From Vitrella brassicaformis CCMP3155 (taxonomy: Eukaryota > Protista > Chromerida): DNA of 64,000 bases. The DNA lies in the NCBI GenBank assembly GCA_001179505.1, contig CDMY01000620.1:4844-68843 (forward strand), in the 5' to 3' direction. The translations under genes were made by a program, and so were the position numbers. The notes under the pieces are model-generated. The model searched no databases and was not told where the DNA came from. It was given only the letters and a program-made list of their open reading frames with translations. Positions 1 to 25,440 of the stretch are shown piece by piece; position 1 is the first letter of the stretch; every line of letters starts with the position of its first letter.

Positions 1-3000
1 GGTTTGTGAGCTGTGTGAAGCAGCCTTCTTTCTACGGGGGACGAACTGCGCACGTGAGCCAAACTTCACAGAGGAAGGGGGCTATCTGTCCTTGGCGTAT
101 CTGGCGTATCTGGTGTCGTTATTTAGATATCTACCAGTGTGGAGTGTTGAGTGACGTGGTCATCGGTGAAGGCCAAGCAAATGACGTCGCGCAAGCAGGG
201 TGTGCGCCTTAAGTAGGTCTCCACCTCCCTCCATCCCATGTTTCTTCTCCTCAGGCTTGTTTCTTCCTTCGCTGAGTGTCATCACCAATGTGCCACGACA
301 CCCAAATGCCAAGCATTGTCGTTTTACATCGACGGCCGTTGCGTCCTCAAAGATGGTTCTGCTCTTAAGAAAATGAGCTTTGAGCTGGGAGTCAAGAGTG
401 CCAGGCTCGACTGCGAGAAGGTGGACGACGTGGTACGAAGAGGCTGCCAACTATCCCGTTGTGGAATGTGCGGCGAGAGGGAGGGGGATTGTTTGCAGTG
501 CCGTAGTGGTTTTATAAGGAATGCCGAGGGAAAATGCGAATTCGAACACGACGAAGGTGGAGAACCATTGAAAGATTGCAGAGAACCTCGTGAACACTGT
601 TGCTGTCGTTCTCTTGTGCAGATGTCGAGTGGCCAAACATCAGCTCTCCGACGTATAGCAAGTTAGAGACTATCAGAGACGAAGTGGCACGGGTTGTCGG
701 CCAGATGACCATCGAACAAAAGATCGGGCAAATGACAATGGCTATCCAGTATGGGTTGAGCCCCATCGACATGAAGGCCAACTACATCGGGTCGTACCAC
801 GAGGGTGGCGACGCCGATATCGGTGACAACTCAGCACAAGAGTGGGTCAGGCTTTCAGATCGTTACTGGAACGCAACCACGGATGTCGACGACGCGGTCA
901 TCCACCCCCTTCACGGGCTCGATGCCGTCCACGGGCACGGCAACGTCCCCACGGCGACATTGTTCCCGCACAACATTGGTTTAGGGTGTGCCAATGAGTC
1001 CGCCCTCATGAGGGAGATTGGCAAGATAACCGCGAAGGAGATGGTGGCCACGGGAGTTGACTGGGCGTTCGCGCCAAGCCATGCGGTGGCGCAGAACTGG
1101 CGGTGGGGGAGAACGTACGAGTCGTTCAGCCAGGTGAGAAACCAAGTCACGAGTGCGTGCGGATGGACGGTTGTGCTGCTGTCTGTGTCTGCAGATACCA
1201 GAGACCGTCGAGAGGCTTGCAAGGGAGTTGGTCACCGGTATAGTGATCGGCTCCCACACATCATCTCTTTCATATCTGACCTGTTGCACGCCCGTGCCTT
1301 CAGGCCTTCAGGGCGATCCGGCTTCGTTATTTCTCGGTGAGGAAAATGTCTTGGCGTGCGCCAAGCACTTTGGGGGGGACGGGGGCACCCAGGGAGGGCT
1401 CGACAAGGGAGACTTTCGTGGGAGGCTGCAAGAGCTGAAAGACACTCATGTGTCGCCCTACTTCGGCTCCATCCAGGAAGGCGTACTGACAATCATGGCA
1501 TCGTTCAATTCGTGGAACGGCGTGAAGGCGCACGGGAATGAATTTCTTCTGAGGGACGTGTTAAAGAGGAAGCTGGGCTTTTCTGGGCTGGTAGTCGGTG
1601 ATTGGTGGGGGCATGAAGAGGTGGAGGGGTGCTCGAGGTTTCTGTGCGAGCAGGCAGTCGAAGCAGGTCAGAATAGAAATGTGCTGGAACAAAGCAGAGA
1701 CAAATGTGTGTGTGTGTGTGTGTGTGTGTGTGTTCCTTTGTTTTTTGTGCTTGTACAGGTGTTGACGTTATGATGGTTGTGGGGGATTGGAAGAAGTATA
1801 TCCCCAACACGATCAGCTCAGCCAAAAAGGGCGGCATCACGGCAGAGAAGATCGACGATTCCGTCACACGAATTCTCACCGTCAAAGCACTCTACGGTGC
1901 CATGACCACTCCCGCTCTGCGAGCAGCAGGCATAAAGGAGCGAGCCTCCCCGTCGCAGCGGCCTGGCGCAGGACAGTTGTCGGTCTTGGAGACTGCCGAG
2001 CATCGCGAGACGGCACGAGAAGCTGTGCGGAAATCTCTGGTCATGCTCAAGAATGGTGTCAAAGGAGCGACAGGCAAACCTATACCCCTGTCCACAACGG
2101 GCAAGTATCTTGTCGCTGGGAGGTGTGCAGACAATATCGGCCTGCAGAATGGGGGATGGACGAAAGACTGGTAAGTGCGTGGCCCTTAACATCACCACAC
2201 ACAGCTCTCTATGGGCCATTTGGCCGGCTAATCAGTCCTACACTCATCGCTCTCATAGGCAAGGCAGTGCCAACTACCCCAACCACCTTTTCGGGAGGAT
2301 CAGTGAATCCATCTACGAAGGATTCAAGAAAGCTACGGAGGGCGGCGGGTCGGCAACCCTCTACCAGATACGCGATGGAGAAATTCCAGACCTCAGCAGC
2401 TACGATGCCCTCATCTTCTGTACTGGAGAAGATCCATACTCAGGTCAAAACGGATCGGACACTCACATATGTGCATCATGTCCTGGCTGAATGGTTTCTT
2501 TCGCAACCAGAGTATCTCGGTGATAGGCACTGGCCAGCATCGATGGAATTTGGAATGTCAGCTGTCGGCGTTCCCGAGAGACAATTCCTCAATGAGGTCC
2601 GGATTAAGTACCCATCTTTGACCATCGTGACCATCTTGTGCTCGGGCCGCCCGCTCTACATGAACGAAGAGATGAACCTGAGCGATGCCTTCATCGCGGC
2701 GTGGCTACCTGGGACACAAGGTGGCGGGGTGGCAGACGTGCTCTTCGGGAAGAACGACTTCGTGGGCAAGTTGTCATTTCAGTGGCCATTGGATCCGTGT
2801 CTGACTACGCAGTACAATGGCACCCATGGGGATGATCCGCCCTTCAGTAATCTGATGCTGCCGATTGGATACGGGCTAGCGTATGACGACGAGTCGCCGA
2901 TTCCAACCCTTAAAGTTGACCACTTGCGAGTGAGAAAGACAGACTTCTCTTTACGATCTCTCGATTTGCTCGTGGCTTGTTTGCAGACTTGCACAAATCA

Positions 3001-3025
3001 CGTGAGGACCAAGACGAAAATATAG
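1..3025 (+). CDS. Multi-exon glycoside hydrolase family 3 beta-glucosidase/exo-glucanase with N-terminal PAN/Apple module; probably 5'-partial
   Basis: Exons join in phase through GT-AG introns. Apple-like ECHHQCATTPKCQALSFYIDGRCVLK precedes GH3 motifs MTIEQKIGQM, GLDAVHGHGNV, FPHNIGLG, RWGRTYESFS, CAKHFGGDG, MASFNSWNG, VVGDW (nucleophile region), SLVMLKN, GEDPY (acid/base), WLPGTQGGGVADVLFG, GKLSFQW, PIGYGL. The true 3' exon is uncertain. Confidence 0.9.
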
Positions 3026-3540
3026 GTCTGCAGGGCCATATTGCTGTTTTGGTGTCGCGTCATGCATGTCGTCCTTGTACAAATTGGCGGGCAAATTGCG
3101 TGTTGTTCATGTCCCGATTATAGGCAGGAAATGCAGAGACAGATTATCAGCTTTGTAAGTTGTCACGTGCACACTGTTACACTGCGCCCTCAACAGCGCC
3201 TGGAAAATTGCACTCAATCGATCGCTGCTCTGGTGGATCCGGAGAATGTAGCACAATACAAGCGGAATACGATCCAAAGCTAGCCCTGCCCCATGTGCCC
3301 TGTGGGTGGATATCCGCCTTGCAGCCATAGGGCCAGCCCTGTAAGTGCAAGGCTAGCCCTGTCGCCATAGGGCGAGCCTTACAGCCATAGGGCGTGAGTG
3401 AACTCTGACCGTGATTCATTCATCGATAAAGCAGCATTGAGTCACCACGTATGAGTCAACACACACAAGCAAAATCCGCCGAACGTCACCAACACACCAA
3501 CACACAGAGACAATAAACGATCCTTCCATCCACCCAGCGT

Positions 3541-4290
3541 CGACCGCCAGGCGATCCTCGACAAGCTCCTTCGTTCGTTCGTTCGTTAACCTCACGGGGA
3601 CCTTGCCCCCCGGCCCCCCGAAGGGGTACTCAAGAAAGAGTCTGTGTGAGTCCATAGAAAATCACGAGTCCGGAGAAGGAAGCATTGGATGCAACGCAAC
3701 CCACCGCTTTCGCGAGGTCGCAGAAAGTAGAAAAGCGGCTACCGCTTCATGCACATGCAGTGAGCGAGAGGTGAGCAAAGAAAAGGCAAACACAAGAGGA
3801 TCACAATAATTGAGATCCCATCGAAAGTAAACCTTGCCATCAGGCGCCGCAAGGCCATACATACGAACAACACGGAATACTTCCCCTCGTGCAGAGCTGT
3901 GGAGGGGACAGCAGAAAAGAATATGCAGCTCATCCTCAACAGGTGGCACCCACATGTGAGGCAAGAAAAACGGTGCAATAAGGGCAAGAGCGTAGTAAAG
4001 GGCCACCGATACGCCCATCAGTAACTGAACAAGGATATGTGCCGGTCCGAAAAGCGAACAGCACACGACGCTTGGGTCTAGGTAGTGAAAAGTAGCATGG
4101 AAAGGTGGACAAAGACTGGATAAGGCGATGAAGCCAGTCTTGGCCTGACTCAATAATGAAATCATCAAGCTCGACACAAAGTGGCCATCCCTCGTCGACT
4201 TCTTCTGGGTGAGCTCAAAGGGTTAGCGTAAGGTGGGATGTCGAGAGGTCGCCTGGGCTGGCAGCTGCTCTTCATCACGTAGCTCGCTGC
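3541..4290 (+). pseudogene. Degenerate CRE-like reverse-transcriptase fragment split by a LINE insertion
   Basis: DRQAILDKL (3542-3568) and KLDTKWPSLVDF (4167-4202) rejoin into the same peptide seen uninterrupted at about 55660-55790 on the minus strand (IDRQAILDELGTKWPSLVDF), which resembles the NAFNSI.R..IL segment of RLE-type RTs. Confidence 0.55.
3569..4166 (-). mobile_element. 5'-truncated non-LTR retrotransposon (LINE) 3' end with C-terminal CCHC knuckle, (AACG)n tail and 6-bp TSD
   Basis: AAGCTC is duplicated at 3563-3568 and 4167-4172. Minus strand encodes CLTCG (shifted frame) then VEDELHILFCCPLHSSAR, and ends GGGGCAAGGTCCCCGTGAGGTT(AACG)n. Confidence 0.75.
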
Positions 4291-4320
4291 ACTTCCTACA
4301 GTTCCCGAAGATGTGTCGGC

Positions 4321-4470
4321 AAATTCTAGACCCCGGCGGGACCGGGGGATGCACACGACAGCCCTTGTCCGTTTTTCCTCAGTGCAGAACACGTGCGTGA
4401 AATCCATCTAATGAGGGGTATGACGGGCATGTGCAACTGCACTGCCATGTACGTGTAAACTGCGATTTTG
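4321..4470 (+). repeat. Dispersed repeat with GC hairpin core (AATTC.AGACCCCGGCGG..CCGGGGGATGCACACGACAGC)
   Basis: Related copies occur at about 5310 (gap duplicate), 29830-29940 (minus) and 35437-35490. Confidence 0.65.
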
Positions 4471-5631
4471 TGAGCAGACTGGGATGGGCGACGTCGAGAC
4501 ACGTTTTGGTTGACGGTGTGGTGATGTCGATGTGGAACCGCGTGGCGGTTGGCTTGGTTGCAGTTGAAACGTTTGCAACCGCTCACTTCTTCACGGATAA
4601 TCAGAAAAGAGATCNNNNNNNNNNNNNNNNNNNNNNNNNNNNNNNNNNNNNNNNNNNNNNNNNNNNNNNNNNNNNNNNNNNNNNNNNNNNNNNNNNNNNN
4701 NNNNNNNNNNNNNNNNNNNNNNNNNNNNNNNNNNNNNNNNNNNNNNNNNNNNNNNNNNNNNNNNNNNNNNNNNNNNNNNNNNNNNNNNNNNNNNNNNNNN
4801 NNNNNNNNNNNNNNNNNNNNNNNNNNNNNNNNNNNNNNNNNNNNNNNNNNNNNNNNNNNNNNNNNNNNNNNNNNNNNNNNNNNNNNNNNNNNNNNNNNNN
4901 NNNNNNNNNNNNNNCAGCTCATCCTCAACAGGTGGCACCCACATGTGAGGCAAGAAAAACGGTGCAATAAGGGCAAGAGCGTAGTAAAGGGCCACCGATA
5001 CGCCCATCAGTAACTGAACAAGGATATGTGCCGGTCCGAAAAGCGAACAGCACACGACGCTTGGGTCTAGGTAGTGAAAAGTAGCATGGAAAGGTGGACA
5101 AAGACTGGATAAGGCGATGAAGCCAGTCTTGGCCTGACTCAATAATGAAATCATCAAGCTCGACACAAAGTGGCCATCCCTCGTCGACTTCTTCTGGGTG
5201 AGCTCAAAGGGTTAGCGTAAGGTGGGATGTCGAGAGGTCGCCTGGGCTGGCAGCTGCTCTTCATCACGTAGCTCGCTGCACTTCCTACAGTTCCCGAAGA
5301 TGTGTCGGCAAATTCTAGACCCCGGCGGGACCGGGGGATGCACACGACAGCCCTTGTCCGTTTTTCCTCAGTGCAGAACACGTGCGTGAAATCCATCTAA
5401 TGAGGGGTATGACGGGCATGTGCAACTGCACTGCCATGTACGTGTAAACTGCGATTTTGTGAGCAGACTGGGATGGGCGACGTCGAGACACGTTTTGGTT
5501 GACGGTGTGGTGATGTCGATGTGGAACCGCGTGGCGGTTGGCTTGGTTGCAGTTGAAACGTTTGCAACCGCTCACTTCTTCACGGATAATCAGAAAAGAG
5601 GCCCCCTCGTAACGGAAGGCGATCGGAAAGG

Positions 5632-5989
5632 TTGGTTGGTTGGTTGGTTACGAGCCCTGGGGATGCCCCGCCTCCCAAGTCTTTGCGAGTCCGATTCATG
5701 TACACTGGCCACGCACGATCACACTCCGATCGACCGATCGCACGCCTCTGTGTCCTCAGCTTTTACACGAGTCGATTTCACGGCAGCTACCCTACGCATC
5801 CTAGTGCCACTCCTCGGCTGGTCCTCGCGGCGCGTCCAGTGAGATCCGTTTCAGAGGCAGTCCAGTGAGATCCTTAGGGTAGCTAGTCTAGACTCCCTCC
5901 CGAAACTTGCGCCATGGGTCCGATGAAGGGCTCGAACCCATGACGACCGGCTCATATGATTCCGTGGCGAACCACTCGGCCATGGAGCC
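5632..5989 (-). mobile_element. tRNA-derived SINE with LINE-like tail and (AACC)n end
   Basis: Minus strand begins GGCTCCATGGCCGAGTGG (A box) ... GGGTTCGAGCCC (B box) with a poorly pairing acceptor stem, and ends GGACTCGCAAAGACTTGGGAGG...(AACC)n. AAAGG flanks both sides (5627-5631 and 5990-5994). Confidence 0.75.
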
Positions 5990-6339
5990 AAAGGGACACC
6001 TTACAAAATTTCGCGGATCGAAGTATAGACATAAACATCTAATTAGCTCGCATAGCTCGCACAGCTCCAGAGCCCGTCTTAAAAGGCAGATGGGCAGCAT
6101 CGTGTGAGGAGATTTGGCGGCCATTCCTGAAGACCTGGGGAAGCCGAATGAAGAGGTGCTTGCTCCGTGAATTACGATGCTGGCCGAGAAACCAAGAATC
6201 GGCTGCACTTCTGTGTGTGACTGAAGAGAGGGCGTAGACAGCAAAGGGAGGTGGCAATGTGGACGACGCAGTGTCGCCCCCTCCCCCTTGAATGGGGGAG
6301 GGGGCTGCAAAAGGTCAGCTTCCATGAGCCAATGGTCAG

Positions 6340-7059
6340 AGGCAGAAGAGAGCGCGTCGACCACGGATGGATTGAAGGTGATAATGGCTGTCATGTAGGA
6401 CTCCGGCACACAGATCTAGTCGTCTGAGCGCTCCTGTGTCTGTCTCGGTAGGTGTGTTGATGTTTCGTTTGGCCGCATTGCCGCCTTCTCTACTGCACGG
6501 TGAGGTGATGGCCGTCACGCAGGATTCTGGCAAGCAGATCTACTCATCTGAATGCTCCTGTGTCTGCCTGGCAGGTATGTTGTTGAGCCGCATTGCCGCC
6601 GTCTCTATTGCCAGGTGAGCCGATGGCCGTCACGCAAGATTCCAACTTACATACATACACTCATCTGTGTGCTTCGGTATGCGGGTCTTCCCGCATTCAT
6701 ATGTGTATGCGCCATTGTTTCGTGCATCCATAGCATCTGAGCACAAAGCTTTTGTCGTGCCCATGTTTGTCTCCTTGCGTGTTTTATTGTTATTTGATAC
6801 GTCGACGGATGGGAATGCAGTGAGTGTCTATACAGTGTACAGGGCATGTTGAGCGGGTCAACTAAATATGGGTCAGAAGGATAGAAGTGAGATGGATGTC
6901 TGACTACTGCTAAAGGTCTGTTGGAGCCGGTCCGCCGCTCGTCGCCCTTGCTTGTGTCGCACCAGTAGCGGTGGGATAATGGTGGTGTAGCATTCATATT
7001 GTGTCTTTCTTGGTCGTCCCTCGCTCTACTCAGTCTGTCTCACTTCATGCTTTTTTCAC
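6340..7059 (+). repeat. Dispersed repeat family B, left part (contains ~120-bp tandem units at 6391-6630)
   Basis: Reverse complement of about 27990-28554; continues at 10740 after an insertion. Confidence 0.8.
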
Positions 7060-10000
7060 TGAAAGACGGTAGATTCGTGTGAAGCTGGCCATAAGGGATA
7101 GACACACAGCCATAGCCATAAGCGATAGACATTCAAGTGAGTGATCGATCCGTTTGTCCGTCATGCATGGACAGACGCACCCATATGCACCCGCAGTCAC
7201 CGTCAGCTCCCGTGTCTATCGACAAAGTATCTATCGACAAAGCCTACCGACCTATCTACTGGGTCTTGCCCGCTGGGCTGACCGCCCGCTACCTCAGGAT
7301 GGCCACTGCAAACACAGACACAGGCACACCATCGACCAACGCAACCCACACCCCATGGCTTGGTGCCTGGTCTCTCACCTGTGCACGGCTGACCGCCAGC
7401 TACATCCGGTTGGCCGCTGCAAACACACACCGGCACACCCTCAGCCAACATTCCATGCCAACCGATGGATCGGTGCCTGGCCTCTTACCTGCTGTCGAGC
7501 CAATATCGTGGAAGGGTAACCTTGGGCGACGCCCGGCCTCATGCTCGCGCCAGAACTGCTGCTCTCCCCCGCACATCGACAGGAAGCTCGAGAACTCGCT
7601 GTCAGCGTACTCCCACACAGCCGTGTCCTCAAAGCCCGCGCGGCGCGTGACGGTGTCGGCGACCTCTCTCCACTCGACGATCTCGTAGCTCCTGCGGTCG
7701 CGGGATGAGCTGTCGGCCGCCTGAACCGCCCACCAGCCGTGCACACGCGTCGACTCGCCCGTCGGCAGGGCGCTGGTCTTGGGCATGATGAAAACGAGGG
7801 ACTTGCCGGCATGCGGGCCCTGGTGCACGAGGCCGAAACACAGGATGGCCGCCTGACTCAGATCAACACACGGAGGCGGATGCAACGGACCGGCCCGCAG
7901 GCGGCGATACAGCTGCATCTGCTGATGGAGCTCGTGCTGCTGCTCCGCCCAAGTCGGGGTGGGCGTCCTGGTGCTGGAGCCAGACATCCTTTCTCTCTCG
8001 TCTGCGAGCTTCCCACCTGAGTGCGAGGCTTTTGGCCAGAGTGCCAGATTGGAGGGATAGGATATGATGCCATCGAGCGTCAAGCGGGGAATTATTGACA
8101 GATAATCTCTATGGACAAGGGTCCGCCACACGCAACACGCAAGTGGCCGTCAGGCGCACACACGAACAGGTCTAAGTCACAGTCATGGACACGGTGGCCG
8201 GCTGCCCATGCGATGGATCACACCACACGAATGGACGGCTCCCCTGCCTTATCCCGGTCCGGCCTGGCTCTCCCCGTCTGCCTGTCTCGCCAACTCAACC
8301 ACCAGCGGACGCGCATCTAACAACGCGCTCGGGCACTACAACCAACATGCTACCACATGCACCCAGCCCGTCTACTTGTCCTGCATGTGCCGGAAGCCCT
8401 TGTCCTTCAGGGTGCGCTGCTCGCGGTCGATGCAGTCCAGGTACTCCTCGTCGTAGTCGTGCGGCTGGCGGCCGGCCCCGGTCTTGGCCCGCTTCCTGGG
8501 ATGCGCCTCGGGGTTGCAGAGGTACGACAGCTTGTCGTTGAGCGACTTCGTCATGCGCCTGGTCAGCCAGTGCTCATCTGTCCACGACAGCGACACAGAC
8601 AACGCACAACACCACACCAATGGTGATAGATAGAAAGGTGCTGCGTGGCCCTTTTCCCCACTCACCGATCTCGCGGGCCTTCTTCTCGTGCGTGTTGAGG
8701 ATGGTGCGGTCTTCCACCTGCTTGACGAACACCTCGTACTTCGGGCTCTTCGGGTCCTCGTGCCACATCCACAACAACTCACTCGTCAACGCCGGGATGA
8801 CCTTGTCAGACAAACGCTGTGGCCACACACACACACACACACATACACACCACACATCACACCCATGCCCACGATGAGACCCGAACAGCCCGGAGGCCCA
8901 TCCTCCGCTCGTCTGTCGAGCTGCGTACCTCGATCTCAGCCGTAACCTTGGCGTGCACGTCCGTCACGGTCGGGTCCTTCTTGAGGTCCTCCAGGAAGTT
9001 GTCGAACGGCTGGTTGAGCCGGTCGCGGATGGCGTTGGACACGACGGTCGCCCAGTCGATACGCCTGCAGACACCACAGAGACACAACCGACCACATCCT
9101 CGCCCGGCAGCGGGCTGTGCGACCTCCCTGCCTGATGATGGGTGGGGTGCTTACGTGCGATTGTAGCCGTCCTCGGGGAGCTTGCAACGGAAGATCTCGA
9201 CGCGCTTGCCGTCCGCCTCGTACACCACCTCCATGTGCAACGCGTCCTTGCCGACGAACTTGACCAACGCCAGCAGCTCCGACCGCTGCAGACATCCACA
9301 CACACACACATACAAACACCACCCTACCCACCGTGTGAGAGCATCCCTCTCTCTCCATGTCGCACCCCACCTACCTTCAGATGCGCTCTCAGACTGCGCT
9401 TCTGGGCTATCGCCTTGAACGCCTCGCCGATGTTCGCAGGCACGTTGACCTTGAGCATGGCCACAATCGCCTTCGCCTCTTGTTCGGTCTGCGCCTTAGT
9501 CTGACGGTAGGCGGACTGCTTGATCTGCTCCACCGTCGCTTGCGCCATCGGCGGCGCCGGCTTGGGCGATGACGAGCCCGCTGACATCCTCGCTAAGCAA
9601 AACAAACGGGGGAAGATGGCGGGAGGGGAAGTGATGGCTGGATGGGATGGATGGATGGCTAGATGCCGCGCCTAAAACAACTACTAAGCAGCCGCTGGGA
9701 CGGCAGGGAGCGGCAGAGGCGGCCTGTGGGGTCTACAAGTCGCTGATGAAGCCGCCAATCCCCGAGTCCAATCTGTGTTAGGGTCTGGTGTGTAAAACAG
9801 AAATATTCTGACCAATGGCTGAGACGTCCTAAGGATCGAACATGTAAAAGGATCGGGCAAAATGAGCTATTGTTTGAGGGAAAGTCGTGCTCTGGGATCG
9901 CGGGATGAGCTTGCAATGAAAGTGTGACCTTTTGCCAGCATTTTTGCGTGGTGCAAAAGACTCTGTGTGTACTTTGAGTGAATCCTTCCCCTCCCCTTGA

Positions 10001-13370: not shown

Positions 13371-14672
13371 TTGTTATCGCCATATTCGCCAATGGCTAGT
13401 TTCAGCGAATCCACCGGCTTTCAACAGTGTGTCAGCTCCATGCACTGAGGGATGATGTCTCTTCGTTGAGGGTGGAGAGTCTCCCCTGGGCGCAAGGGCC
13501 AGATCGAAACTGGCACTCAAATCTTGGTTATGGTGGGGGTCATTGCCCGTACAATGTAACTGTGGAAGAAACGCGAAGATCCTCGGGCACTCGATACATA
13601 TCATGTCTCTATGTTGTCGTGCAGATGCAAATGCGCATCACTCCACTACACGTAAAAAATGCGGACTTTCGATTGCGAGATAAGGTTGGGACCATCGAAG
13701 AACTCTGTCTCGATCAAAATGTTGCCGCTGTACAAGTTTGCAATGAAACAACCAAAAAGTGCAAAATCCATGTCGTCATGCCCACCTGAGAGTTTCAGCA
13801 GGAATCATCTCTGATTGTTCTGCATTGTAAAGGAGAGGAGACAGGGCTGGGAGCCTAGATAAATCCTTCACTTCTGTACTACGGACCTGCCGCTTCAATT
13901 GTCTGTTCCCACGAGTTGGTAGAGCCCGGAATGACAAACCCAAAATCGAAACACCACTCTACAAAGGAGCGAATGGGAGGCATGTCAAAAACCATCCTCA
14001 ACGTGCTTCCTACCTTCAAGTAGATCGCCGTCAAAGAGAATGTTCTGCTTCATTCGGAGCGCTTTCTGTGAAGGAGACCAGGCGGACAAATCTGCGCACC
14101 TGTCATTGCATCATGAGATGTACCATGCTTTCCCGCGAAGAGAAGCTGATCTCGCGAGCCACTACCTGGAATGGGAAAGCGCCCCTGACTGCGAGTGAAT
14201 CCTGTGCCATGCTATCCGTACGCGACAATTGAGAATTGCCTTCGGTATCCGAGCTGCATGTCACGAGGAACACATTGTGTATGCAAGCCAAGCCAGTATC
14301 AGCCCCACCAGACGTTTCGGATCTCCGATGGTCCCTGGCGACATGAGAGTTTGATTTATGCAACAGGCCCGCAAACGTGCTTACCATTCTCCGCAGTGCC
14401 AGAGGACCTCACCAGTCTCGGCGTTCTTCATCTTCATCTCATTTCTGTGCACACCAGAATGAAAGGCAGCTGTCTACCTCCTCTCTCTCCCTTACATTCT
14501 GAACCCCTCTCTCGCGGCCTTCGCATGCTTCCATTCTGGAAGGGGGGCTGAAGATGACGGGTTCCCCTTCCCCTTCGTTGGTGCCTTGGCAGCCTTCTTG
14601 GCGCTTGCGGGATACATGTGGGAGAGGGTGGGGGACGGACCACAAAGCTCGCACGTTTCAAATTGTTGAGAA

Positions 14673-14849
14673 TGGGAGCGTAAGGATGGTACGTCCGGTC
14701 GCGGACGTACGTGCAGCGGAGCACACACACCAGGCAGAGGCGCAGTAGCGCACTCTGCCTCCAGCGAGCTTACTAGCTCGCCTTCTTCCGTGTAACGATC
14801 TCGTCGGGCTCGCGATTTTTGGAGCTCGTGCCTCGTACTCGCAAACGAC
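14673..14849 (+). repeat. Split direct repeat A1 of the YR retrotransposon
   Basis: Near-identical to 22798-22981. Confidence 0.9.
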
Positions 14850-14904
14850 GCCGACGACAACGCACGAACAGCCACACCTCACCCCTGTAACGGCATCCTT
14901 CGGC

Positions 14905-17282
14905 ATGCGGATCGTGTGGCTCCTCGCATTCGTTGCGGCCGTCGGCGGTGTGCCACCGCCACAACGAAGCCGGCAAGGACACCCCGGGCGCATGCAGCGT
15001 CGGGGCAGGCCAACAACATCCAGGATGACCAACGGCAACAGCCAGACTGAGTTTTCCACGGTGGATCACGGAGAGCTCATGGCTATGATGCGTTGGCAAG
15101 GGATGATGCGTTGGCAAGGGCTGTTCGGGCGCAGGCACTCCTCGCCGAGCCAGAACAGACCGCCAAAAGCGGGGAGCACCAACGGCACCATCCCGACAGC
15201 GGCAAAGAGGAGAGACCCCATGGCGTCGTCGGGGACCCAAGGGGGCGGTGACATACCTCCCTTCCCTTTTCCACCCACCCCTCGCATGCCGTCCACCCAC
15301 CCAGCAATCGAGAGAATGAATGCCGCCTTGGCCATCCAAGCCGTAGAGAAACTGCTGAAGTTGGAGAGGGTGCAAAAGGTCTGGCAGTGGTTCACGAACC
15401 AAGCGGCACAGCAGCTGGGAGCCGGCCTGGCGACTTTTGCGAAGGGAGGTGGGACTGGAGAGACAGGAGGATCGACGAGAACGACGGCCTCCTTCCCCGG
15501 CGACGACTGGGAGCCCCACTTCAAAACCCTGGAGGGGATGGAGGGCACTACGGGTCAGGAGGTGATGGTGTACATGATGTCCAACAACAACAACAACAAC
15601 AGCCAGCTGGGAGGGAGGGGAACAGCGGGAGGAGTGGTCATGGGCTCAGCTCCGACGACAATCTCAGGCACCACTCCGGCAACAGCGGGCCCCTCACCAG
15701 CGACGGGCGCCTCATCAAGCCCCGCAGCAGCTGCAGCCGCAGCCGCAGGTATCTCGACAACGGGGCCAGCCGTCATCCAGAGCATGGCGCCTCCAACACC
15801 CTGGAGCCAACCAGCAGCTGCGGCCGCCGCCACATCCACCCAGCAGCCGCCACAGGGACTGATGCCGCCACCAGGACTGATTCCGCCAGCAGGACTGATG
15901 CCGCCAGCAGGACTGATGCCGCCAGCGAACACCCAACCGAGGTCAGCACTGGGGATCATGCAGGGGATCGCATCCAATGGGGCGTCACACACTCAACCAC
16001 TATTCGAGAACCAGTCGATGGGCGCCTACCCGAGTGAGGCAGTGCCCACGCCATTCACCAGCCTGACCGGAGGCAACCTGGGCGACTCGCAGCCCAAGCC
16101 CCCACAGCCAAGTGGCCAGTTTGATATGGGCGCGTGCCAGGCCTTAGCCACCAGTATACAGCAGGCCATGCAGCAGGCCGCGGTCAGTGAGAGCACGTGC
16201 TCAACCGAGTAGCGCTCGCCGAGGGGCAATTTGTGTGGGTTCTGGTGTGTGTGGTGGTGTGCGTGTGTGTGTGTGTGTGTGTGTGCAGGCACCGGTTGTC
16301 GATAACAGGAGCGTCTTCAGCCAGCTGATCACCATATCCGACCGCAACGTCCAGTACGTGTCAGAGGTGGACAGCATCAAAGCAGACCCTCTCTTTCTCC
16401 AGCACCCAGCTCTCGGCCGGCTGGCCGACGTGGTCAAAAGGCTGGAGGAGCAGCTGCGGTCCCAGGGACAGCTGCTGGAAGGAGACATGCTCGCCTACTA
16501 CCTAGACGGCTCCATACAGCGCGACCTGTGCGCAGCCCTCGTCATCGAAGTGCGCAAAGGAGGGGACAAGGACAACACGGTCTTCGGGGCACGGACAGGC
16601 AGCCTGCAGCTCACGTATACCGACATGAAGGAAATGGGCCCACTCGACATTCTCCGCACCCTGCAAAAGCTCGGCGAGATGTACCACAAAGGGCTCCTGC
16701 CAGAGGAGCGCGAGAAAGCGCCGCGCTTCACCACCTTATACACAAAACTCGTCGAGGGCTCCAACGTCTATGGAGGCCAACACGTAAGTGGGCAAAGGAA
16801 TGGGAGTAGTGACGAGGGGAAGCGTCCAAGTGACACGTCGTCCATGCGTCGCCTGTGCCGTGCACAGGTGTGGGCGCCGAGTATGAAGATGGCCATTCAG
16901 CGTGCAGCAAAGCTGCAAGGCGGGCCGATGTATCCCATCGTGTTCGACACGGCATTGGTGGCCGATGTGCGTGCGCGCGTTGAGTGGATCGAGGGCAAGA
17001 GTGTCATGTAGCCCCATCCAAGTGGTGCCTCGCAGCCCTGCAATGGGCGGCGCGACCCCGTCGGCAGCAGCAGCGGCGGCGAGTGGGTCCCCCCAGCACA
17101 ACGTGCGCGTGCCGAACGGATGTTGCCTCAACTGCGTGAGGGGCCACCGGCTGTCGCCCGACGACCCGTCAGTGAAGCACGCGTTGAAGGACTGCCCGCG
17201 GGATCGCATGCTCAAATGCCCCAACACCAGGTGCGGCGGGGTGCACTCGGCGAGTGAGTGTCCGCTGAAGGCCAACACGTAG
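14905..17282 (+). CDS. Gag-like ORF1 of the YR retrotransposon, with two introns and C-terminal zinc knuckles
   Basis: Low-complexity P/A/Q/G N-terminus; in-frame phase-0 introns at 16183-16288 and 16784-16867. CLNCVRGH...KHALKDC and CPNTRCGGVHSASEC knuckles lie in a shifted frame just after the stop at 17011. Confidence 0.7.
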
Positions 17283-17689
17283 CAAGCCCGCAGGCATGTA
17301 GTTTTCACAGCGAGGGCGCGAAGCCGACTCTCGGATTGTGTTTAGTCGATAGTCAGTGGAATAGTGTCTGTGCGTGATAGTCATCGCAATCGTGCAAGGC
17401 TTGAATGCAGTGCATAGTCGCCTCGTGCGTGACACGAATGCATGGACATGGCATCTAAACGCTACTGCCGCAACACGCATACAACGTACATCATTCTCCT
17501 CCTTCTCTGTGTCGTGTACACACGGAAGAGGACACACAAGCAGACCTGCCGGTAAATGTCGAGCTCCCCTTCGGGCACTCACGAACAGCAGCCCGCACGC
17601 AAAACACCCACACCGTGGGTGCGGGGCCGTCAGCTGCCACCAGCAAGAGCAGAGACGTTGGGTTTCCATGAGTCGTTCGTGGCAGCCAT

Positions 17690-18240
17690 AGAGAAGGGAG
17701 TGCCGATATCGTTGGTGCCACCGGTGCCCTCGATGGAGCTGAGAAACTATCGGTCAGTCGAAGCGCACAAGGACAACGTGGCGGCCGAGATCGACAGGCT
17801 GATTAGTTAGCGGGCAGCGCTGTGGGTCGTCTCTCGTCTCGGGGCAGTGTCGAAAGCCGACAAGCCAGACAAAGTGCGGGTGGTGGTGTACCCTCTCGCG
17901 CTCAAGAGGCCAAACAGCCGTCTCAAAGCCACCCGTCTCTATACACGCAGAGAAGGATACCATCAGGCCAAAGTGGACATGAGAGATGGATGTCTGCACC
18001 TACCAGTAGCCCCCAGAAGAAGTCGATCTGTTCGGCTTTAATGTTCGCCGACCACGGCCAAGTACCATCGCTTCAGATACGTCCCGTCTGGATTGGCGTC
18101 GTCGCCTTTCCTCTGCTGTCACCTCATGAGCAGAGTGCGCGAGAAGCTGCTCGAGGTTGGCGTGAACGTGGCACTCGGGTTCGTGGAGGGAAAGGAAGAG
18201 ATGCAGAGAGCGGCGAAGTACCTGCGCTTAGCTCAGTCCT
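17690..18240 (+). pseudogene. DIRS-type reverse transcriptase, frameshifted and lacking YxDD (second copy about 19270-19560)
   Basis: AKVDMRDG(C/F)LHLPVAPEEVDLLGFKF and a PFGLASSP-like motif, followed by GVNVALGFVEG where YxDD is expected. Confidence 0.8.
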
Positions 18241-20101
18241 GCACAGACACAAAGCACAGCGTCGTCCCACCACGAGCGTTGAGCACGGCGCGCTTGCTCC
18301 AAGAGGGCGTGGTGACGAAGAAGGTGCAGGAGTGGCAAAAGGGCGAGACAGTGATGGACGCCTTCAGACAGGAGGCAGAGAAAGCAGAAACAGAACAGGG
18401 ATATGCGGAGGTACCGGCCCCGTGTGCTTTGACGTACGTGTGTAAGTAAGGGTATGAGGAGGACAACCATAGGAGCGGGACCAGGGCGATCGCATGAGCA
18501 AGCCAAATCCATGAGCGAGACCAACAAATCGTGCGCCTGAGTAACATGTGCAGAGGGACACACACACATCGACAGAAATGGCGATACATCGAGGTCGCCC
18601 GACCCATTCCCTGGTACATGTGCAGTCTCTTTGTCCGTTGCAGGCCCCATCCGCTGTGTCCCGCCCGCCGCGGATCAGGCGATGTAGTCGTTGACGTTGG
18701 CACCGCCAGGTCGCCCGATACGTTTGCAGCGGCCCTGCAATGCCCATGCAGCCTCGGATTCGACCCCGCAGACGCGGAGCAAGTCGCCCTCGTGGCCAGG
18801 AGGGGCTTCCAAACCGGTCTCGCGGACTCGACAGTGAAAGAATACAGTCGAATTGCAGCGGAAGTGTTCAACAAGTGCCCTCAACTCTTCCCACTTGACT
18901 CACCCGAGAAGATCATTTACGCCCTCGCCACAGTGGTGCCAGGCCACGCACACAAGCTNNNNNNNNNNNNNNNNNNNNNNNNNNNNNNNNNNNNNNNNNN
19001 NNNNNNNNNNNNNNNNNNNNNNNNNNNNNNNNNNNNNNNNNNNNNNNNNNNNNNNNNNNNNNNNNNNNNNNNNNNNNNNNNNNNNNNNNNNNNNNNNNNN
19101 NNNNNNNNNNNNNNNNNNNNNNNNNNNNNNNNNNNNNNNNNNNNNNNNNNNNNNNNNNNNNNNNNNNNNNNNNNNNNNNNNNNNNNNNNNNNNNNNNNNN
19201 NNNNNNNNNNNNNNNNNNNNNNNNNNNNNNNNNNNNNNNNNNNNNNNNNNNNNNNNNNCCCTCGATTAGCGACGCGCTGGAGAAGGATACCATCAGGCCA
19301 AAGTGGACATGAGAGAGGGATTTCTGCACCTACCAGTGGCCCCAGAAGAAGTCGATCTGCTCGGCTTTAAGTTCGCCGACCACGGCCAAGTTCCATCCCT
19401 TCAGATACGTCCCGTCTGGATTGGCGTCGTCGCCCTTCCGCTGCTGTCACCTCATGAGCAGAGTGCGCGAGAAGCTGCTCGACGTTGGCGTGCACGTGGC
19501 ACTCGGCTTCGTGGAGGGAAAGGAAGAGATGCAGAGAGCGGCGAAGTGCCTGCGCTTAGCTCAGTCCTACACAGCAGCGTCGTCCCACCACGAGCGTTGA
19601 GCACGGCGCGCTTGCTCCAAGAGGGCGTGGTGACGAAGAAGGTGCAGGAGTGGCAAGAGGGCGAGAGAGTGATGGACGCCTTCAGACAGGAGGCAGAGAA
19701 AGCAGAAACAGAACAGGGAAATAAGGGCCCGTGTGCTTTAACGTACGTGTGTAAGTAAGGGCATGGGGAGGACAACCATAGGAGCGGGACCAGGGCGATC
19801 GCATGCGCAAGCCAAATCCATAAGCGAGACCAATAAATCGTGCGCCTGAGTAACATGTGCAGAGGGACACACACACAGCGACAGAAATGGCGATACATCG
19901 AGGTCACCCGAGCCATTCCCTGGTACACGTGCAGTCCCTCTGTCCGTTGCAGGCCCCCATCCGCTGTGTCCCGCCCGCCGCGAATCAGGCGATGTAGTCG
20001 TCGACGTTGGCACCGCCAGGTCGCCCGATACGTTTGCAGCGGCCCTGCAATGCCCATGCAGCCTCGGATTCGACCCCGCAGACGCGGAGCAAGTCGCCCT
20101 C

Positions 20102-20835
20102 GTGGCCAGGAGGGGCTTCCAAACCGGTCTCGCGGACTCGACAGTGAAAGAATACAGTCGAATTGCAGCGGAAGTGTTCAACAAGTGCCCTCAACTCTTC
20201 CCACTTGACTCACCCGAGAAGATCATTTACGCCCTCGCCACAGTGGTGCCAGGCCACGCACACAAGCTGCCCAAAGTCCGCGCAGCCCTTCGCCTCTGGC
20301 ACACCATGAAGGGCTACCCCGAGCCGCCCTTCCAGAGCGACCAAGTGCAGCGTTTTCTGCGAGGCCTGACGGCCCATAGCAACGACATGTGCTGGAACGA
20401 CTACGACCCCACAGTCCCGCTGCCAGCCGCGTATCTCCCACCACTGGTATGGCATTGGTGGCGCGCCACACCAACCGTCGCCACGCACGCCAACGTCCGC
20501 AATGCAGCCATCCCCCTCCTCCAGTTCTTCGGTGTGCGAAGGGCGGGTGAGTGCGAGTGGGAGACGTCGAGGCGACCGAGGACAAGGTCACCATCTTCGT
20601 GCGCAAACAGAAGAACGACCGCACGGGGCAAGGGCTGCGCCTGCAGCTGCCAGGCAAGCCCTCCCGGTTCCCGCACTTCAAAGAGCAGGGCACACCCCTC
20701 ATCCGTCCCAAAGCGGGCGAACGCGCCAACACAAACGAACCAACCCAGCCGGTCGTCCTGGAACAGGGCCCTCAGGCGGGCGGCGCAAGAAGTGGGCATG
20801 CAGACGCGGGTATCGTCACACTCCCTCCGGAGGCC
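20102..20835 (+). pseudogene. Tyrosine recombinase of the element (other partial copies 18772-18958 and about 21630-22362)
   Basis: N-terminal GLADSTVKEYSR, box I FFGVRRAGE, VTIFVRKQKNDRTGQG and box II RVSSHSLRR. Frameshifts are present and the catalytic Tyr segment was not found. Confidence 0.85.
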
Positions 20836-22655
20836 NNNNNNNNNNNNNNNNNNNNNNNNNNNNNNNNNNNNNNNNNNNNNNNNNNNNNNNNNNNNNNNNN
20901 NNNNNNNNNNNNNNNNNNNNNNNNNNNNNNNNNNNNNNNNNNNNNNNNNNNNNNNNNNNNNNNNNNNNNNNNNNNNNNNNNNNNNNNNNNNNNNNNNNNN
21001 NNNNNNNNNNNNNNNNNNNNNNNNNNNNNNNNNNNNNNNNNNNNNNNNNNNNNNNNNNNNNNNNNNNNNNNNNNNNNNNNNNNNNNNNNNNNNNNNNNNN
21101 NNNNNNNNNNNNNNNNNNNNNNNNNNNNNNNNNNNCTTAGCTCAGTCCTACACAGACACAAAGCACAGCGTCGTCCCACCACGAGCGTTGAGCACGGCGT
21201 GCTTGCTCCAAGAGGGCGTGGTGACGAAGAAGGTGCAGGAGTGGCAAGAGGGCAAGAGAGTGATGGACGCCTTCAGACAGGAGGCAGAAAAAGCAGAAAC
21301 AGAACAGGGAAGTAAGGGCCCGTGTGCTTTAACGTACGTGTGTAAGTAAGGGCATGGGGAGGACAATCATAGGAGCGGGACCAGGGCGATCGCATGAGCA
21401 AGCCAAATCTATAAGCGAGACCAATAAATCGTGCGCCTGAGTGAGTAACATGTGCAGAGGGACACACACACATCGACAGAAATGGCGATACATCGAGGTC
21501 GCCCGCCGCGGATCAGGCGATGTAGTCGTTGACGTTGGCACCGCCAGGTCGCCCGATACGTTTGCAGCGGCCCTGCAATGCCCATGCAGCCTCGGATTCG
21601 ACCCCGCAGACGGGGAGCAAGTCACCCTCGTGGCCAGGAGGGGCTTCCAAACCGGTCTCGCGGACTCTACAGTGAAAGAATACGGTCGAATTGCAGCGGA
21701 AGTGTTCAACAAGTGCCCTCAATCTCTTCCCACTTGACTCACCCGAGAAGATCATTTATGCCCTCTCCACAGTGGTGCCAGGCCACGCATACAAGCTGCC
21801 CAAAGTCCGCGCAGCCCTTCGCCTCTGGCACACCATGAAGGGCTACCCCAAGCCGCCCTTCCAGAGCGACCAGTGCAGCGTTTTTCTGCGAGGCCTGACG
21901 GCCCAAAGCCGACATGTGCTGGAACGACTACGACCCCACAGTCCCGCTGCCAGCCGCGTATCTCCCACCACTGGTATGGCATTGGTGGCGCGCCACACCA
22001 ACCGTCGCCACGCACGCCAACGTCCGCAATGCAGCCATCCCCCTCCTCCAGTTCTTCGGTGTGCGAAGGGCGGGTGAGTGCGAGTGGGAGACGTCGAGGC
22101 GACCGAGGACAAGGTCACCATCTTCGTGCGCAAACAGAAGAACGACCGCACGGGGCAAGGGCTGCGCCTGCAGCTGCCAGGCAAGCCCTCCCGGTTCCCG
22201 CACTTCAAAGAGCAGGGCACACCCCTCATCCGTCCCAAAGCGGGCGAACGCGCCAACACAAACGAACCAACCCAGCCGGTCGTCCTGGAACAGGGCCCTC
22301 AGGCGGGCGGCGCAAGAAGTGGGCATGCAGACGCGGGTATCGTCACACTCCCTCCGGAGGCCTGTGAAGAAGAACACACAGACACCGTAGGCATGTCAGC
22401 GAGAGCGTAGTAGAGCGTACCAGTGTACAATAGCAGAGAGAAACGCCGTGGAGAAAGCTGTGACGAAACAGGACAACAACGCATAGCACTGGGCGTAAGG
22501 TGAGGGGCGAACGAGTGACTCACCCAGTGCAGCGAGTGAAGCGCATCAAAGACAGACATCACCTGCGTCGAAACACACACATACAGGAGGGTCGTCTGCG
22601 TCGATCTGCGCCAGATCTGGCCTCCTATCTTCACCGCTCAACGTGGTCGTTGGGA

Positions 22656-23162
22656 GCACGCGCGCGCGTGTCGGGCTCGAGGCCGGTTGGGCCTGGGCCA
22701 TTGATTGCGGTGAAGATAGGACAGATCAGGCAGGCNNNNNNNNNNNNNNACAGGCACGCTCGCAGTGCGAGCACACATCGGTGCGGAGGCGAACGTATGG
22801 GAGCGTAAGGATGGTACGTCCGGTCGCGGACGTACGTGCAGCGGAGCACACACATCAGGCAGAGGCGCAGTAGCGACTCTGCCTCCAGCGAGCTCACTAG
22901 CTCGCCTGCTCGCCTTCTTCCGTGTAACGATCTCGTCGGGCTCGCGATTTTTGGAGCTCGTGCCTCGTATTCGCAAACGACCCACCCACCCGAACACATT
23001 CATGTTCTCCCGCCGGTCTCCCCCGCACGCGCGCGCGTGTCGGGCTCGAGGCCGGTTGGGCCTGGGCCATTGATTGCGGTGAAGATAGGACAGATCAGGC
23101 AGGCAGATCAGCAGACAGGCACGCTCGCAGTGCGAGCACACATCGGTGCGGAGGCGAACGTA
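22656..23162 (+). repeat. B1-A2-B2 terminal repeat block of the YR retrotransposon
   Basis: B1 22656-22797, A2 22798-22981, 43-bp spacer, B2 23025-23162. Confidence 0.9.
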
Positions 23163-24084
23163 ACTGTTACGCCATCAGCCCAAAATGAAACGTAGTGCGA
23201 GCTTAGCGAACAGACCTGCGCAGCCAGCCAGCTAGTGAGGCAGGACGGACCAGTGAACAGTGAGGCAGGCTGGCGCGGGCCGTCTTGCCCAGCTGGATCA
23301 GACTCTTACATCGTCTCGGTTACTTAACCATCCTTCGGCTCTTGCAGTGCTGCACTTGTGCGATATCTCTGTGTTCCCCGGCTATACAGCTTCTCTGACA
23401 GGTTATTTTGCCCACTTAGCCTTTTGTAGCTCTGCTTCCTTCCTCCCCCGGCCATCTCTCTCTCTCCTGCTGAAGTAGCTGTGCCCCTCTCACCGCTATA
23501 TAGCGGATCTTCAAGAGCACGTCGACCAGAACATGGCGCATCAAGAGCACGACAACGTGGACCATGACCACAACAACGTCGACGAGCATGAGCATGACGG
23601 CGCAATGGAGGATGACGTCGATGCACACGGCGGTGGCCAGGATCAGCACGAGCACGAGATGGAGGTCGACGCGTGTGATCAAGACCAAGAGATGGCTGAG
23701 GGTGAGAATCCCAGGCCAGGTGCGAGGGAGGGTGAGGTTCCTCCTGCACCGAACACACACGGTGGTGTCTCGCCTGATGGTGTTGCCTGTGGCTGCTGTG
23801 CCTGTGGCTGCTGTGCCTGTGGGTGGTGTGCGTGTAGCTATGCCTCATGACGTCCCTCGCACGTCCCGTGACGGCAAGGATGTCAACCCACATGGGCACG
23901 ACGGCGCCAGTCTACAGAGACACCCAGTTCGCAGACAGGCGCGTCATGACGTGTGATGTGTGCCAACGTTTGTGCATATCTGTGTGGGACTGGTCGATTG
24001 TGATGGTCTCAATCGATTGGATTGAGTCATTGCATTCAGTGTCTCAAGCACGGCACAATCAGGTGTCTGCTGTCTCCTCGCTCT

Positions 24085-25440
24085 CAAGTCTCCCGTCAAG
24101 CACACAACAACATCACCAAGGCATCCGCAGGCCAATGCGCTGATCGAACGCTTTAACCGTACCTTGTGAAGGATTGGATACGTCCGTATCTCAGCAAGGA
24201 GCAAACGAACTGGGACAGAGTGATTCCCTTGGCCTTGTACGCGTATCGTACGACGGAGCATGAGTCCACAGGATTCACGCCATTCAAGATGCTGTACGGC
24301 CGAGAAGCGGTGCATCCGAGCAGCACGGCAAGGCTTGTCGCGATGAATGCAGAGCCAATCGACGTCGAGGAAGCCGTCGAGCTGATAAAAGAGGGTCTTC
24401 AAGCGGTCCACAAGAAAGCTCGTGAGACGATGAGCAAGAAGAAGCAGCAGGCTACTGAGCGCGAGAAGCATTTGCCTGCACCAAGGCAATTCCAGGAAGG
24501 AGACAGAGTGCGCATATACAATGACCAAGTGCATAAGTGTCTCAGCAAGAAGCTGGCCTCACCTTGGCGGACAGTCGGCATCGTTCAGGAGAAGAAAGGA
24601 CCAGTTACCTACAAGGTCCGTGTGTGTGGCGATCAAAAGGCGAGGAGCATCAATGTCGATCGGCTGAAGAGAGCACCACCACCAGAAGACGAGGAAGCGC
24701 CACCACCAGAAGACGAGATCGAAGTGACGGAAGGCGACCTGAAGAGGGACAAAAGGCAGACAGTCTTCAATCAGCACGCATTCTTGTCGCCTGAGCAAGA
24801 GCATACCTTGAAGGATTTTTCCCTCGAGGAAGACCACGTGCCGACAGCCCGAACGCAGAGAGCATCAGAGGCCACATTTGACCCGATGGCACATGACCCG
24901 AGCCTCAGAGACGTCCAACCAGACCAGCGATTTGGGCGTGGCGAGCGGCACGAAGTCGAACAGGTCATCGGCAAGAGGACGCACCACGGCAAGGTGCAGT
25001 ACAAACTCAAATGGCGCTGGTATCCGCTCTCGCACGCAACCTGGGAAGACGAAGAGATTCTCACTTGCACAGAACTCGTACAGGAATACGAAAACAGTGA
25101 CAACGTGCCTGACCTGGACGAGCATGCTTCGCTCTTTCCCGCGTTGTACAGTGTGGTGAGAGTCCGCCATGTAAAGGAGCTCAATCGCGAGCACACCGTC
25201 AAGGTGACGGGGTTGGACAAGGAAGGCATACAGATACAATACCTGAAGGAATCGACGCGCACAAAGAGACTAAAGAAGAAGAGTCTCGTAGGACGGAAGC
25301 GGACCATTCCTTTGGCTAGCTTCCTTCGGAATTACCAATGGGAGAGAGAGTGTGACGATCCAGCTGTGCCTGCTCCATTTGGCGGCACAGCATGGCAACC
25401 GATCAGAGTGCATGGACTGACGAGTTCCCAGCGCTCTTGA
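24085..25440 (+). mobile_element. Ty3/Gypsy (chromovirus-like) pol 3' remnant: integrase C-half plus chromodomain
   Basis: HPQANALIERFNRTL, a frameshift, then NWDRVIPLALYAYRTTEHESTGFTPFKMLYGRE. Chromodomain EVEQVIGKRTHHGKVQYKLKW..YPLSHATWEDEE. Confidence 0.9.

Follow-up and report, generated by a model that had tools for sequence, protein, structure and literature searches.

Between positions 14673 and 23162 of a 64,000-nucleotide (nt) stretch of the genome of the chromerid Vitrella brassicaformis CCMP3155 (contig CDMY01000620.1; the whole stretch is called the window here) lies a retroelement of the tyrosine recombinase (YR) kind, the gag gene of which is interrupted by introns. Its repeats and coding parts are on the forward strand, and the repeats follow the split-direct-repeat order A1-coding-B1-A2-B2, as they also do in a sister copy on scaffold C610. 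The A1 terminal repeat (14673-14849) pairs with A2 (22798-22981) at 94-99% identity, and B1 (22656-22797) is 100% identical to B2 (23025-23162) on either side of a 14-N gap (22736-22749) where B2 has 10 bases. A spacer of 43 nt separates A2 from B2. Both ends of the element are exact, since unrelated flanks set in at 14672/14673 at three loci (window, C610 and C123) and beyond 23162 at three loci (window, C330 and C750); the loose ends of DNA contigs likewise mark the 5′ end. An earlier reading, made from the letters of the window alone and called the sequence-only reading below, had proposed this layout and these coordinates, and both stand. Inverted repeats of at least 40 nt were not found in 13500-24500, so a DIRS1-like terminal structure does not apply, and no target-site duplication was seen at the element.

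Two 300-N gaps (18959-19258 and 20836-21135) divide the element into three scaffold pieces, a, b and c, and the letters across each gap are not continuous. After each gap the sequence resumes 1.0-1.3 kb upstream in element coordinates: the 17950-18958 part of piece a recurs in piece b at 19280-20268 (94.9% identity over 1,010 nt), and the 19575-20835 part of piece b recurs in piece c at 21166-22362 (96-98% identity). The interval 18959-20268 is therefore a gap followed by a redundant part of piece b, with a C610-like left end, and 20836-22362 is a gap followed by a redundant part of piece c. With each part counted once, the element comes to 4,286 + 567 + 800 = 5,653 bp, and it is the two gap-flanked redundancies that inflate it to 8.5 kb in the scaffold. 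The Vitrella assembly rests on short reads processed with velvet, SSPACE, GapFiller and IMAGE (PMC4501334), and the three pieces differ among themselves by 2-5%; most likely, the scaffolded interior is a patchwork of reads from different family members. The C610 copy runs without gaps from the pol remnant to B2, has its parts in the same order as the window, and shows a gap-flanked redundancy of its own, located in gag.

The gag gene follows A1. Exon 1 (14905-16182, in open reading frame (ORF) 14905-16212) is of low complexity and rich in Pro and Ala; its true start may be at 15103, and the annotated protein P0001 of the C123 copy begins at the position matching 15103. Exon 2 (16289-16783) encodes the conserved gag core, which is homologous to the gag ORF of a related element on scaffold C1057 (E 3e-11). 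Exon 3 (16868-17011) runs in the window into an early TAG at 17009-17011, and the last exon (17036-17282, in ORF 16902-17282) carries two Cys/His zinc-knuckle-like motifs that are out of frame with the window gag and are also found in the C1057 gag (E 1e-5). The window gag stops at 17011, before the zinc knuckles, because of two lesions. One is the loss of a single nucleotide behind 17007, where C610 and the RNA contigs have an extra base and continue in frame past the window's TAG; the other is a deletion at 17022-17023, where C610 has 76 extra bases. When the introns of the C610 gag are removed exon by exon, its four exons are open through both zinc-knuckle motifs to the stop codon.

Two introns separate the gag exons of the window, at the positions given in the sequence-only reading. 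Intron 1 (16183-16288; 106 nt; GTCAGT...(GT)n...CAG) puts a TAG in frame at 16210. The last codon of exon 1 is complete at 16182 and the first of exon 2 opens at 16289, and removal of the intron joins ORF 14905-16212 to ORF 16187-17011 exactly in frame, as had been claimed. Its GT, its AG and the in-frame join are kept in three copies (window, C610 and C123). Intron 2 (16784-16867; 84 nt; GTAAGT...CAG) has no in-frame stop. When the C1057 gag is aligned to this region, exactly 28 residues find no partner at the intron, between conserved flanks (...H before the gap, VWA... after it), and the gag of a family on C324 likewise matches without an insertion at this site.

Sequencing runs covering the locus bear on the splicing of these segments. 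Runs X1 and X3 behave as DNA, with long contigs and no joints. The contigs of X8 and X12 leave out stretches with the shape of canonical introns, one of them a 51-nt minus-strand intron in the unique sequence to the left of the element. Intron 2 is skipped in both of the RNA-like runs: exactly 84 nt are missing in X8, and X12, whose allele is divergent, has the same donor and is 85 nt shorter on balance. Within intron 2 the depth is zero in both of these runs, whereas contigs of DNA run X1 extend across it. The X8 cut is ambiguous by 3-4 nt because the C610 allele has T at 16783. At intron 1, the alignment of contig 11 of X12 breaks off at 16183, leaving 6 letters unplaced, and joints near the masked repeat 16245-16295 were dropped. 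Of the two junctions predicted by the sequence-only reading, then, that of intron 2 appears in RNA-like contigs, and that of intron 1 was not directly seen. The X8 contig carries the C610 allele at every listed site in exon 2, so the spliced gag mRNA seen there is that of the sister copy, and the spliced RNA comes mainly from a C610-like allele.

A third gag intron, absent from the sequence-only reading, occurs in C610 (72 nt; GTGAGT...GTCAG). The X8 RNA retains only GCCT of the 76 bases of C610, which shows that a 72-nt intron was removed, and DNA runs X1 and X3 have the whole insert (listed as a 94-letter insert). The deletion at 17022-17023, imprecise and 76 nt long, thus took intron 3 together with 4 exon bases, so that only introns 1 and 2 remain in the window copy. 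Precise loss of this intron via spliced RNA was considered and rejected, as the deletion is 4 nt longer than the intron and has non-canonical bounds.

The search for further copies covered the whole assembly (72,700,666 bases in 1,064 scaffolds). The gag gene was found at three loci only (window, C610 and C123), and the C123 copy extends off the end of its scaffold. The introns are present in every genomic copy that covers them, and no intron-less (processed) copy with a continuous gag was found in the 72.7 Mb assembly, an outcome in keeping with the sequence-only reading. The intron segments are not repeated elsewhere in the genome, where only the (GT)n tract matches other places, and the related families on C1057 and C324 have a gag without introns 2 and 3. 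These observations support taking the gag segments as true spliceosomal introns, as opposed to secondary insertions confined to a single dead copy.

Because the C1057 element has, in the matching position, an ORF homologous to the gag core and the Cys/His motifs, gag is a gene of the element and not a captured host gene. Pfam gave no match for the gag pieces, the knuckle exon included. An AlphaFold2 model of the C1057 gag core is helical, with a predicted local distance difference test score (pLDDT) of 65, and comparison of the core with the PDB gave no significant match (best Foldseek E 0.75; best VIA Z 6.1, for a helical hairpin only). The matches were generic helical ones, so a capsid fold is a possibility and no more. 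Other searches were run exon by exon and not on the joined spliced gag: a word-indexed protein search with exon 1 had the annotated C123 fragment P0001 as its sole match, the same search with exon 2 had none, so these matches included no transcript-derived protein across the junction of exons 1 and 2, and an ESM Atlas search with exon 2 gave no usable match.

The copies of gag also hold a record of selection. Between copies, the ratio of nonsynonymous to synonymous substitution rates (dN/dS) is 0.42-0.73, and 29 of the 67 changes between the window and C123 gag are synonymous, against about 17 expected. Part of the divergence therefore dates from a time when the function of Gag still counted. 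Between copies, introns and exons are diverged to about the same extent. Exon 1 is open in the window and in C610 and has two in-frame stops in C123, and P0001 terminates at a premature stop, before intron 1. The C123 exon 1 also contains, at 8592-8866 (between 15442 and 15443 of the window), a 294-nt in-frame extra segment that is coiled-coil-like. A loose end in X12 matches this C123 version of exon 1, which indicates that the C123 allele is expressed in the X12 sample.

Downstream of gag, the enzymes survive as remnants. Ten ORF pieces of the window had no match in Pfam, and the remnants are recognised through the C1057 relative, whose ORFs match RVT_1 (1e-12), RVT_3 and Phage_integrase (6e-10). 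The N-terminal part of pol and a reverse transcriptase (RT) remnant that comprises the fingers and palm only occupy 17592-18311, broken by stops and frameshifts (tblastn against the C1057 pol, E 9e-16 and 1e-21). Within this region, 17874-18311 corresponds to residues 10-142 of the 580 residues of the C1057 RT (E 1e-21), with GFVE in place of YVDD, and tblastn with the C1057 pol found no window match beyond RT residue 142, that is, none for the thumb and RNase H. The YR remnant starts in piece a at 18642-18958 (tblastn to C1057 YR residues 5-112, E 6e-12) and continues at 20269-20835, which retains the box I Arg and HSLRR and has a frameshifted middle part. In piece b as a whole, 19955-20833 matches C1057 YR residues 6-316 (E 1e-35), the middle only in another frame. 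In the 3′ internal region (22363-22655) the YR C-terminus is reduced to a GRW-like trace that lacks the catalytic Tyr; by tblastn, nothing in the window corresponds to the C-terminal stretch that bears the Tyr in the C1057 YR. That the YR frameshifts might be tiny introns was considered and rejected, since a segment of about 40 nt would remove conserved residues.

The same RT truncation and a frameshifted YR occur in C610. Since these lesions are common to both copies, they predate the split between them, and the family was non-autonomous at its last spread. RT and YR are therefore dead in this family, with lesions shared between loci, and a family that cannot copy itself must have spread in trans or at the DNA level. 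The sequence-only reading had described a complete element with a DIRS-type RT and YR. As ancestry, this assignment survives by way of the C1057 relative; what the element itself holds are decayed remnants without Pfam matches, and with a redundant interior across two 300-N gaps and a length of about 5,653 bp it cannot be called complete.

The relative on C1057 (35000-44999; element at about 1358-8729) looks autonomous. It encodes gag (3434-4783), the N-terminal part of pol (5019-5552), RT and RNase H (5608-7347) and YR (7532-8626), with pol split over two frames at 5552/5608. Its A-type repeats lie 7,311 nt apart, and a B-type repeat was not detected in it. Upstream of its gag is a tandem array (2729-3389) of units of about 138 nt, each with a GTGAG motif.

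The element falls within the DIRS order and by its layout is Ngaro-like, a candidate for the Ngaro superfamily. The two features of the DIRS order, an RT-derived coding sequence and a tyrosine recombinase, are both present as decayed remnants that match the C1057 ORFs, and the split direct repeats of Ngaro, A1-[ORFs]-B1A2B2, occur in the window and in C610. A Dam-like methyltransferase (PF05869) is absent from the C1057 relative and from its ten best RT homologues tested, the corresponding region being deleted in the family itself; a more distant RT homologue, P0006, does carry PF05869. The lack of this domain in the C1057 relative fits Ngaro better than DIRS1 or PAT. Of the features of PAT-like elements such as kangaroo, split direct repeats are present, and a methyltransferase-like domain was not detected in the C1057 relative, its region being deleted here. 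The element is not a Crypton, which would have a YR without reverse transcriptase, as it has an RT remnant and gag.

Among known systems, kangaroo-1, described by Duncan and colleagues in 2002, is reportedly a PAT-like YR element with split direct repeats. In Ty1/Copia and BARE elements, splicing takes out pol and so yields an mRNA with gag alone, and Gag can still be made from the unspliced RNA. The Vitrella family resembles these elements in that splicing separates the RNA for Gag translation from the RNA for replication (PMC5580714, PMC3735527), and differs in that its introns interrupt gag itself, so that unspliced RNA cannot make Gag. A passage in PMC1636488 names kangaroo-1, L1, Tad, Penelope and Athena as elements in whose transcripts introns have been identified. 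Kangaroo-1 is an element of this order and has a green alga, Volvox carteri, as its host. According to the same source, which draws on Arkhipova et al. 2003, genomic copies of Penelope-like elements keep spliceosomal introns, implying an unspliced template; those elements belong to another order, with a GIY-YIG domain, no YR and unrelated intron positions. Introns are also normal in the YR-encoding Cryptons (PMC13465315), which have neither RT nor split direct repeats, in contrast to the RT-derived sequence and gag of the Vitrella family. Among the papers searched, none describes a YR retrotransposon with spliceosomal introns in its gag.

The Ngaro elements of Cafeteria burkhardae (PMC8547959) share the A1-[ORFs]-B1A2B2 layout, a length of about 6 kb, a high guanine-cytosine content, the gene order gag - RT/RNase H - YR and the absence of a visible target-site duplication. 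The Vitrella family differs from Ngaro in its decayed RT/RNase H and YR, the spliceosomal introns of its gag and the 43 nt that part A2 from B2. In Symbiodinium, likewise an alveolate host, the SymbioDIRS elements (PMC5890265) have A-coding-B-A-B repeats with RT and a Phage_integrase-type YR; their genes are described as intronless and many carry a DNA methyltransferase (DNMT), whereas the Vitrella family has introns and no DNMT. As in SymbioDIRS, a C5-methylase domain does occur in one distant RT homologue of the C1057 element (P0023). The suggestion of the sequence-only reading that the lineage is undescribed in this host group can accordingly be kept for Vitrella, where the published repeat table puts DIRS elements at 0 bp (PMC4501334), and has to be given up more widely, as YR elements of A-coding-B-A-B layout are known in Symbiodinium. 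The family thus adds YR retroelements to a genome for which the published table has none.

The family is small, with at least five loci and sequence differences between copies of 2-8%. Besides the three gag-bearing copies it includes two 5′-truncated fragments, on C330 and C750, which stop exactly at the 3′ terminus of the element; truncated fragments with exact 3′ ends fit copying begun at the 3′ end. Matches to the YR protein at 34-43% identity occur on four more scaffolds (C1057, C33, C863 and C499). On C610 (1205-1399, 905-1204), B2 abuts the opening 58 nt of an A repeat, beyond which lies an assembly gap; the joint is either a circle-type or tandem junction or a scaffold artefact. C610 is the most informative copy of the family, and the window copy, which is dead and mis-scaffolded, is the least.

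Reverse transcription of spliced RNA erases introns, and retroelements that keep theirs are rare test cases for how template RNA can be shielded from the spliceosome. The locus is probably one copy, about 5.65 kb long, of a low-copy, pol-decayed, Ngaro-like YR family with a three-intron gag that spread in trans from unspliced RNA. On this account, the family's last spread would have been that of a non-autonomous element, enzymes supplied by an autonomous relative would most likely have copied its unspliced RNA in trans, and Gag would have been made from fully spliced mRNA only. Since the introns interrupt gag and unspliced RNA cannot encode Gag, whatever is translated must differ from the RNA or DNA that is copied; two separate RNA pools would be maintained, one translated and one copied.

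Other histories can be written for the same features. It is conceivable, if unlikely, that the family spread as DNA: a YR, formerly its own or that of a relative, or homologous recombination between the A repeats or between the B repeats, would excise a circle that reinserts in the manner of a Crypton, and the introns would bypass reverse transcription altogether. Retention of the introns in all copies, with zero processed copies, is just what such a route would leave, and at both loci that cover it the family RT lacks its catalytic motif and RNase H. Split direct repeats would permit excision of a circle, and the C610 joint of B2 with the start of an A repeat resembles a circle or tandem junction, although that joint adjoins an assembly gap and is possibly an artefact. 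The YR of the family, however, is as dead as its RT, with shared frameshifts and no Tyr, the two 5′-truncated fragments with exact 3′ ends resemble products of incomplete reverse transcription, and the RT-derived sequence places the family among the retroelements.

The introns could also have been gained after movement had ceased, with gag a resident, host-like gene, domesticated or tolerated, and its copies mere DNA duplicates. This is quite unlikely. Decay of pol beside a C610 gag that is intact, expressed and spliced, a dN/dS below 1, a very low copy number and the absence of introns 2 and 3 from the gag of the C1057 and C324 families would all suit a resident gene, but five loci with exact element termini and unrelated flanks speak for transposition and not segmental duplication, two of the three gag copies (window and C123) are broken, and the terminal repeats are still 94-100% alike. 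Least probable by far, and hardly credible, is the case by which the sequence-only reading would have been refuted, namely that segments resembling introns entered one dead copy as secondary insertions or are GT...AG pairs that arose there by chance. Intron 2, which has no in-frame stop, could be read through, and the junction of intron 1 was not directly observed; against this, every copy that covers the segments has them, the alignment with the relative's gag is interrupted by exactly 28 residues at intron 2, and none of the segments is a repeat found elsewhere apart from matches of the (GT)n tract. For introns 2 and 3, which are removed from RNA and present in DNA contigs, the idea is refuted.

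Several points weigh against spread in trans from unspliced RNA. The sequence-only reading had proposed that the element copies an unspliced full-length RNA, and nothing shows such a template: no unspliced full-length sense RNA was seen, in contigs that are unable to show it, and the family is unable to copy itself. The closest autonomous relative found has only 35-45% protein identity, and no B repeat was detected in it, which makes mobilisation in trans by its family a conjecture. In Dictyostelium DIRS-1, an engineered intron was lost on retrotransposition, so intron retention is not the default for this order, and the keeping of three introns needs a special explanation. The support for splicing of intron 1 is indirect, with the joint falling in the masked (GT)n repeat, and X8 and X12 are not labelled as RNA, their nature being inferred from canonical skips. 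The repeated interior could also, with low probability, consist of true tandem partial duplications instead of scaffold artefacts.

A broader and more tentative proposal can be made, namely that the YR retroelements of Vitrella run a strict two-RNA cycle, with Gag made solely from a multiply spliced mRNA and with an RNA that wholly avoids splicing as the template, and that introns 2 and 3 were possibly gained in a lineage that was still spreading. It is the absence of these two introns from the C1057 and C324 gag that raises the prospect of their gain within a moving retroelement lineage. Such a history, should it be true, would amount to spliceosomal intron gain within a retrotransposon.

Transcription at the locus is not confined to gag. 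Over the RT remnant, X8 and X12 contain CT..AC joints, not found in the DNA runs, that define three antisense GT-AG introns on the minus strand (17939-18003, 18362-18437 and 18537-18617). One acceptor lies in a segment unique to the window copy, so this antisense RNA comes from the window locus. A minus-strand host gene encoded over the RT remnant was considered and rejected, as the antisense spliced RNA has no convincing ORF, and it is apparently non-coding. To the left of the element, a well-expressed minus-strand transcript covers 14400-14763 and has its 51-nt intron at 14445-14495; in X12 it reaches into A1 to at least 14763, and coverage is zero at 14856-15311. This host transcript may start inside the terminal repeat of the element.

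To the right of the element, a 424-residue ORF on the plus strand (24166-25440) carries a chromodomain (Pfam Chromo, 6e-13), matches an integrase C-terminus weakly and looks like the tail of a chromovirus-type Ty3/gypsy element, which makes the neighbourhood transposon-rich. Finally, marine sediment metagenomes of 2025 (X10, X13, X15 and X16) contain up to 45% of the element's sampled words, and Vitrella or a close relative with this family seems to be present in those sediments.

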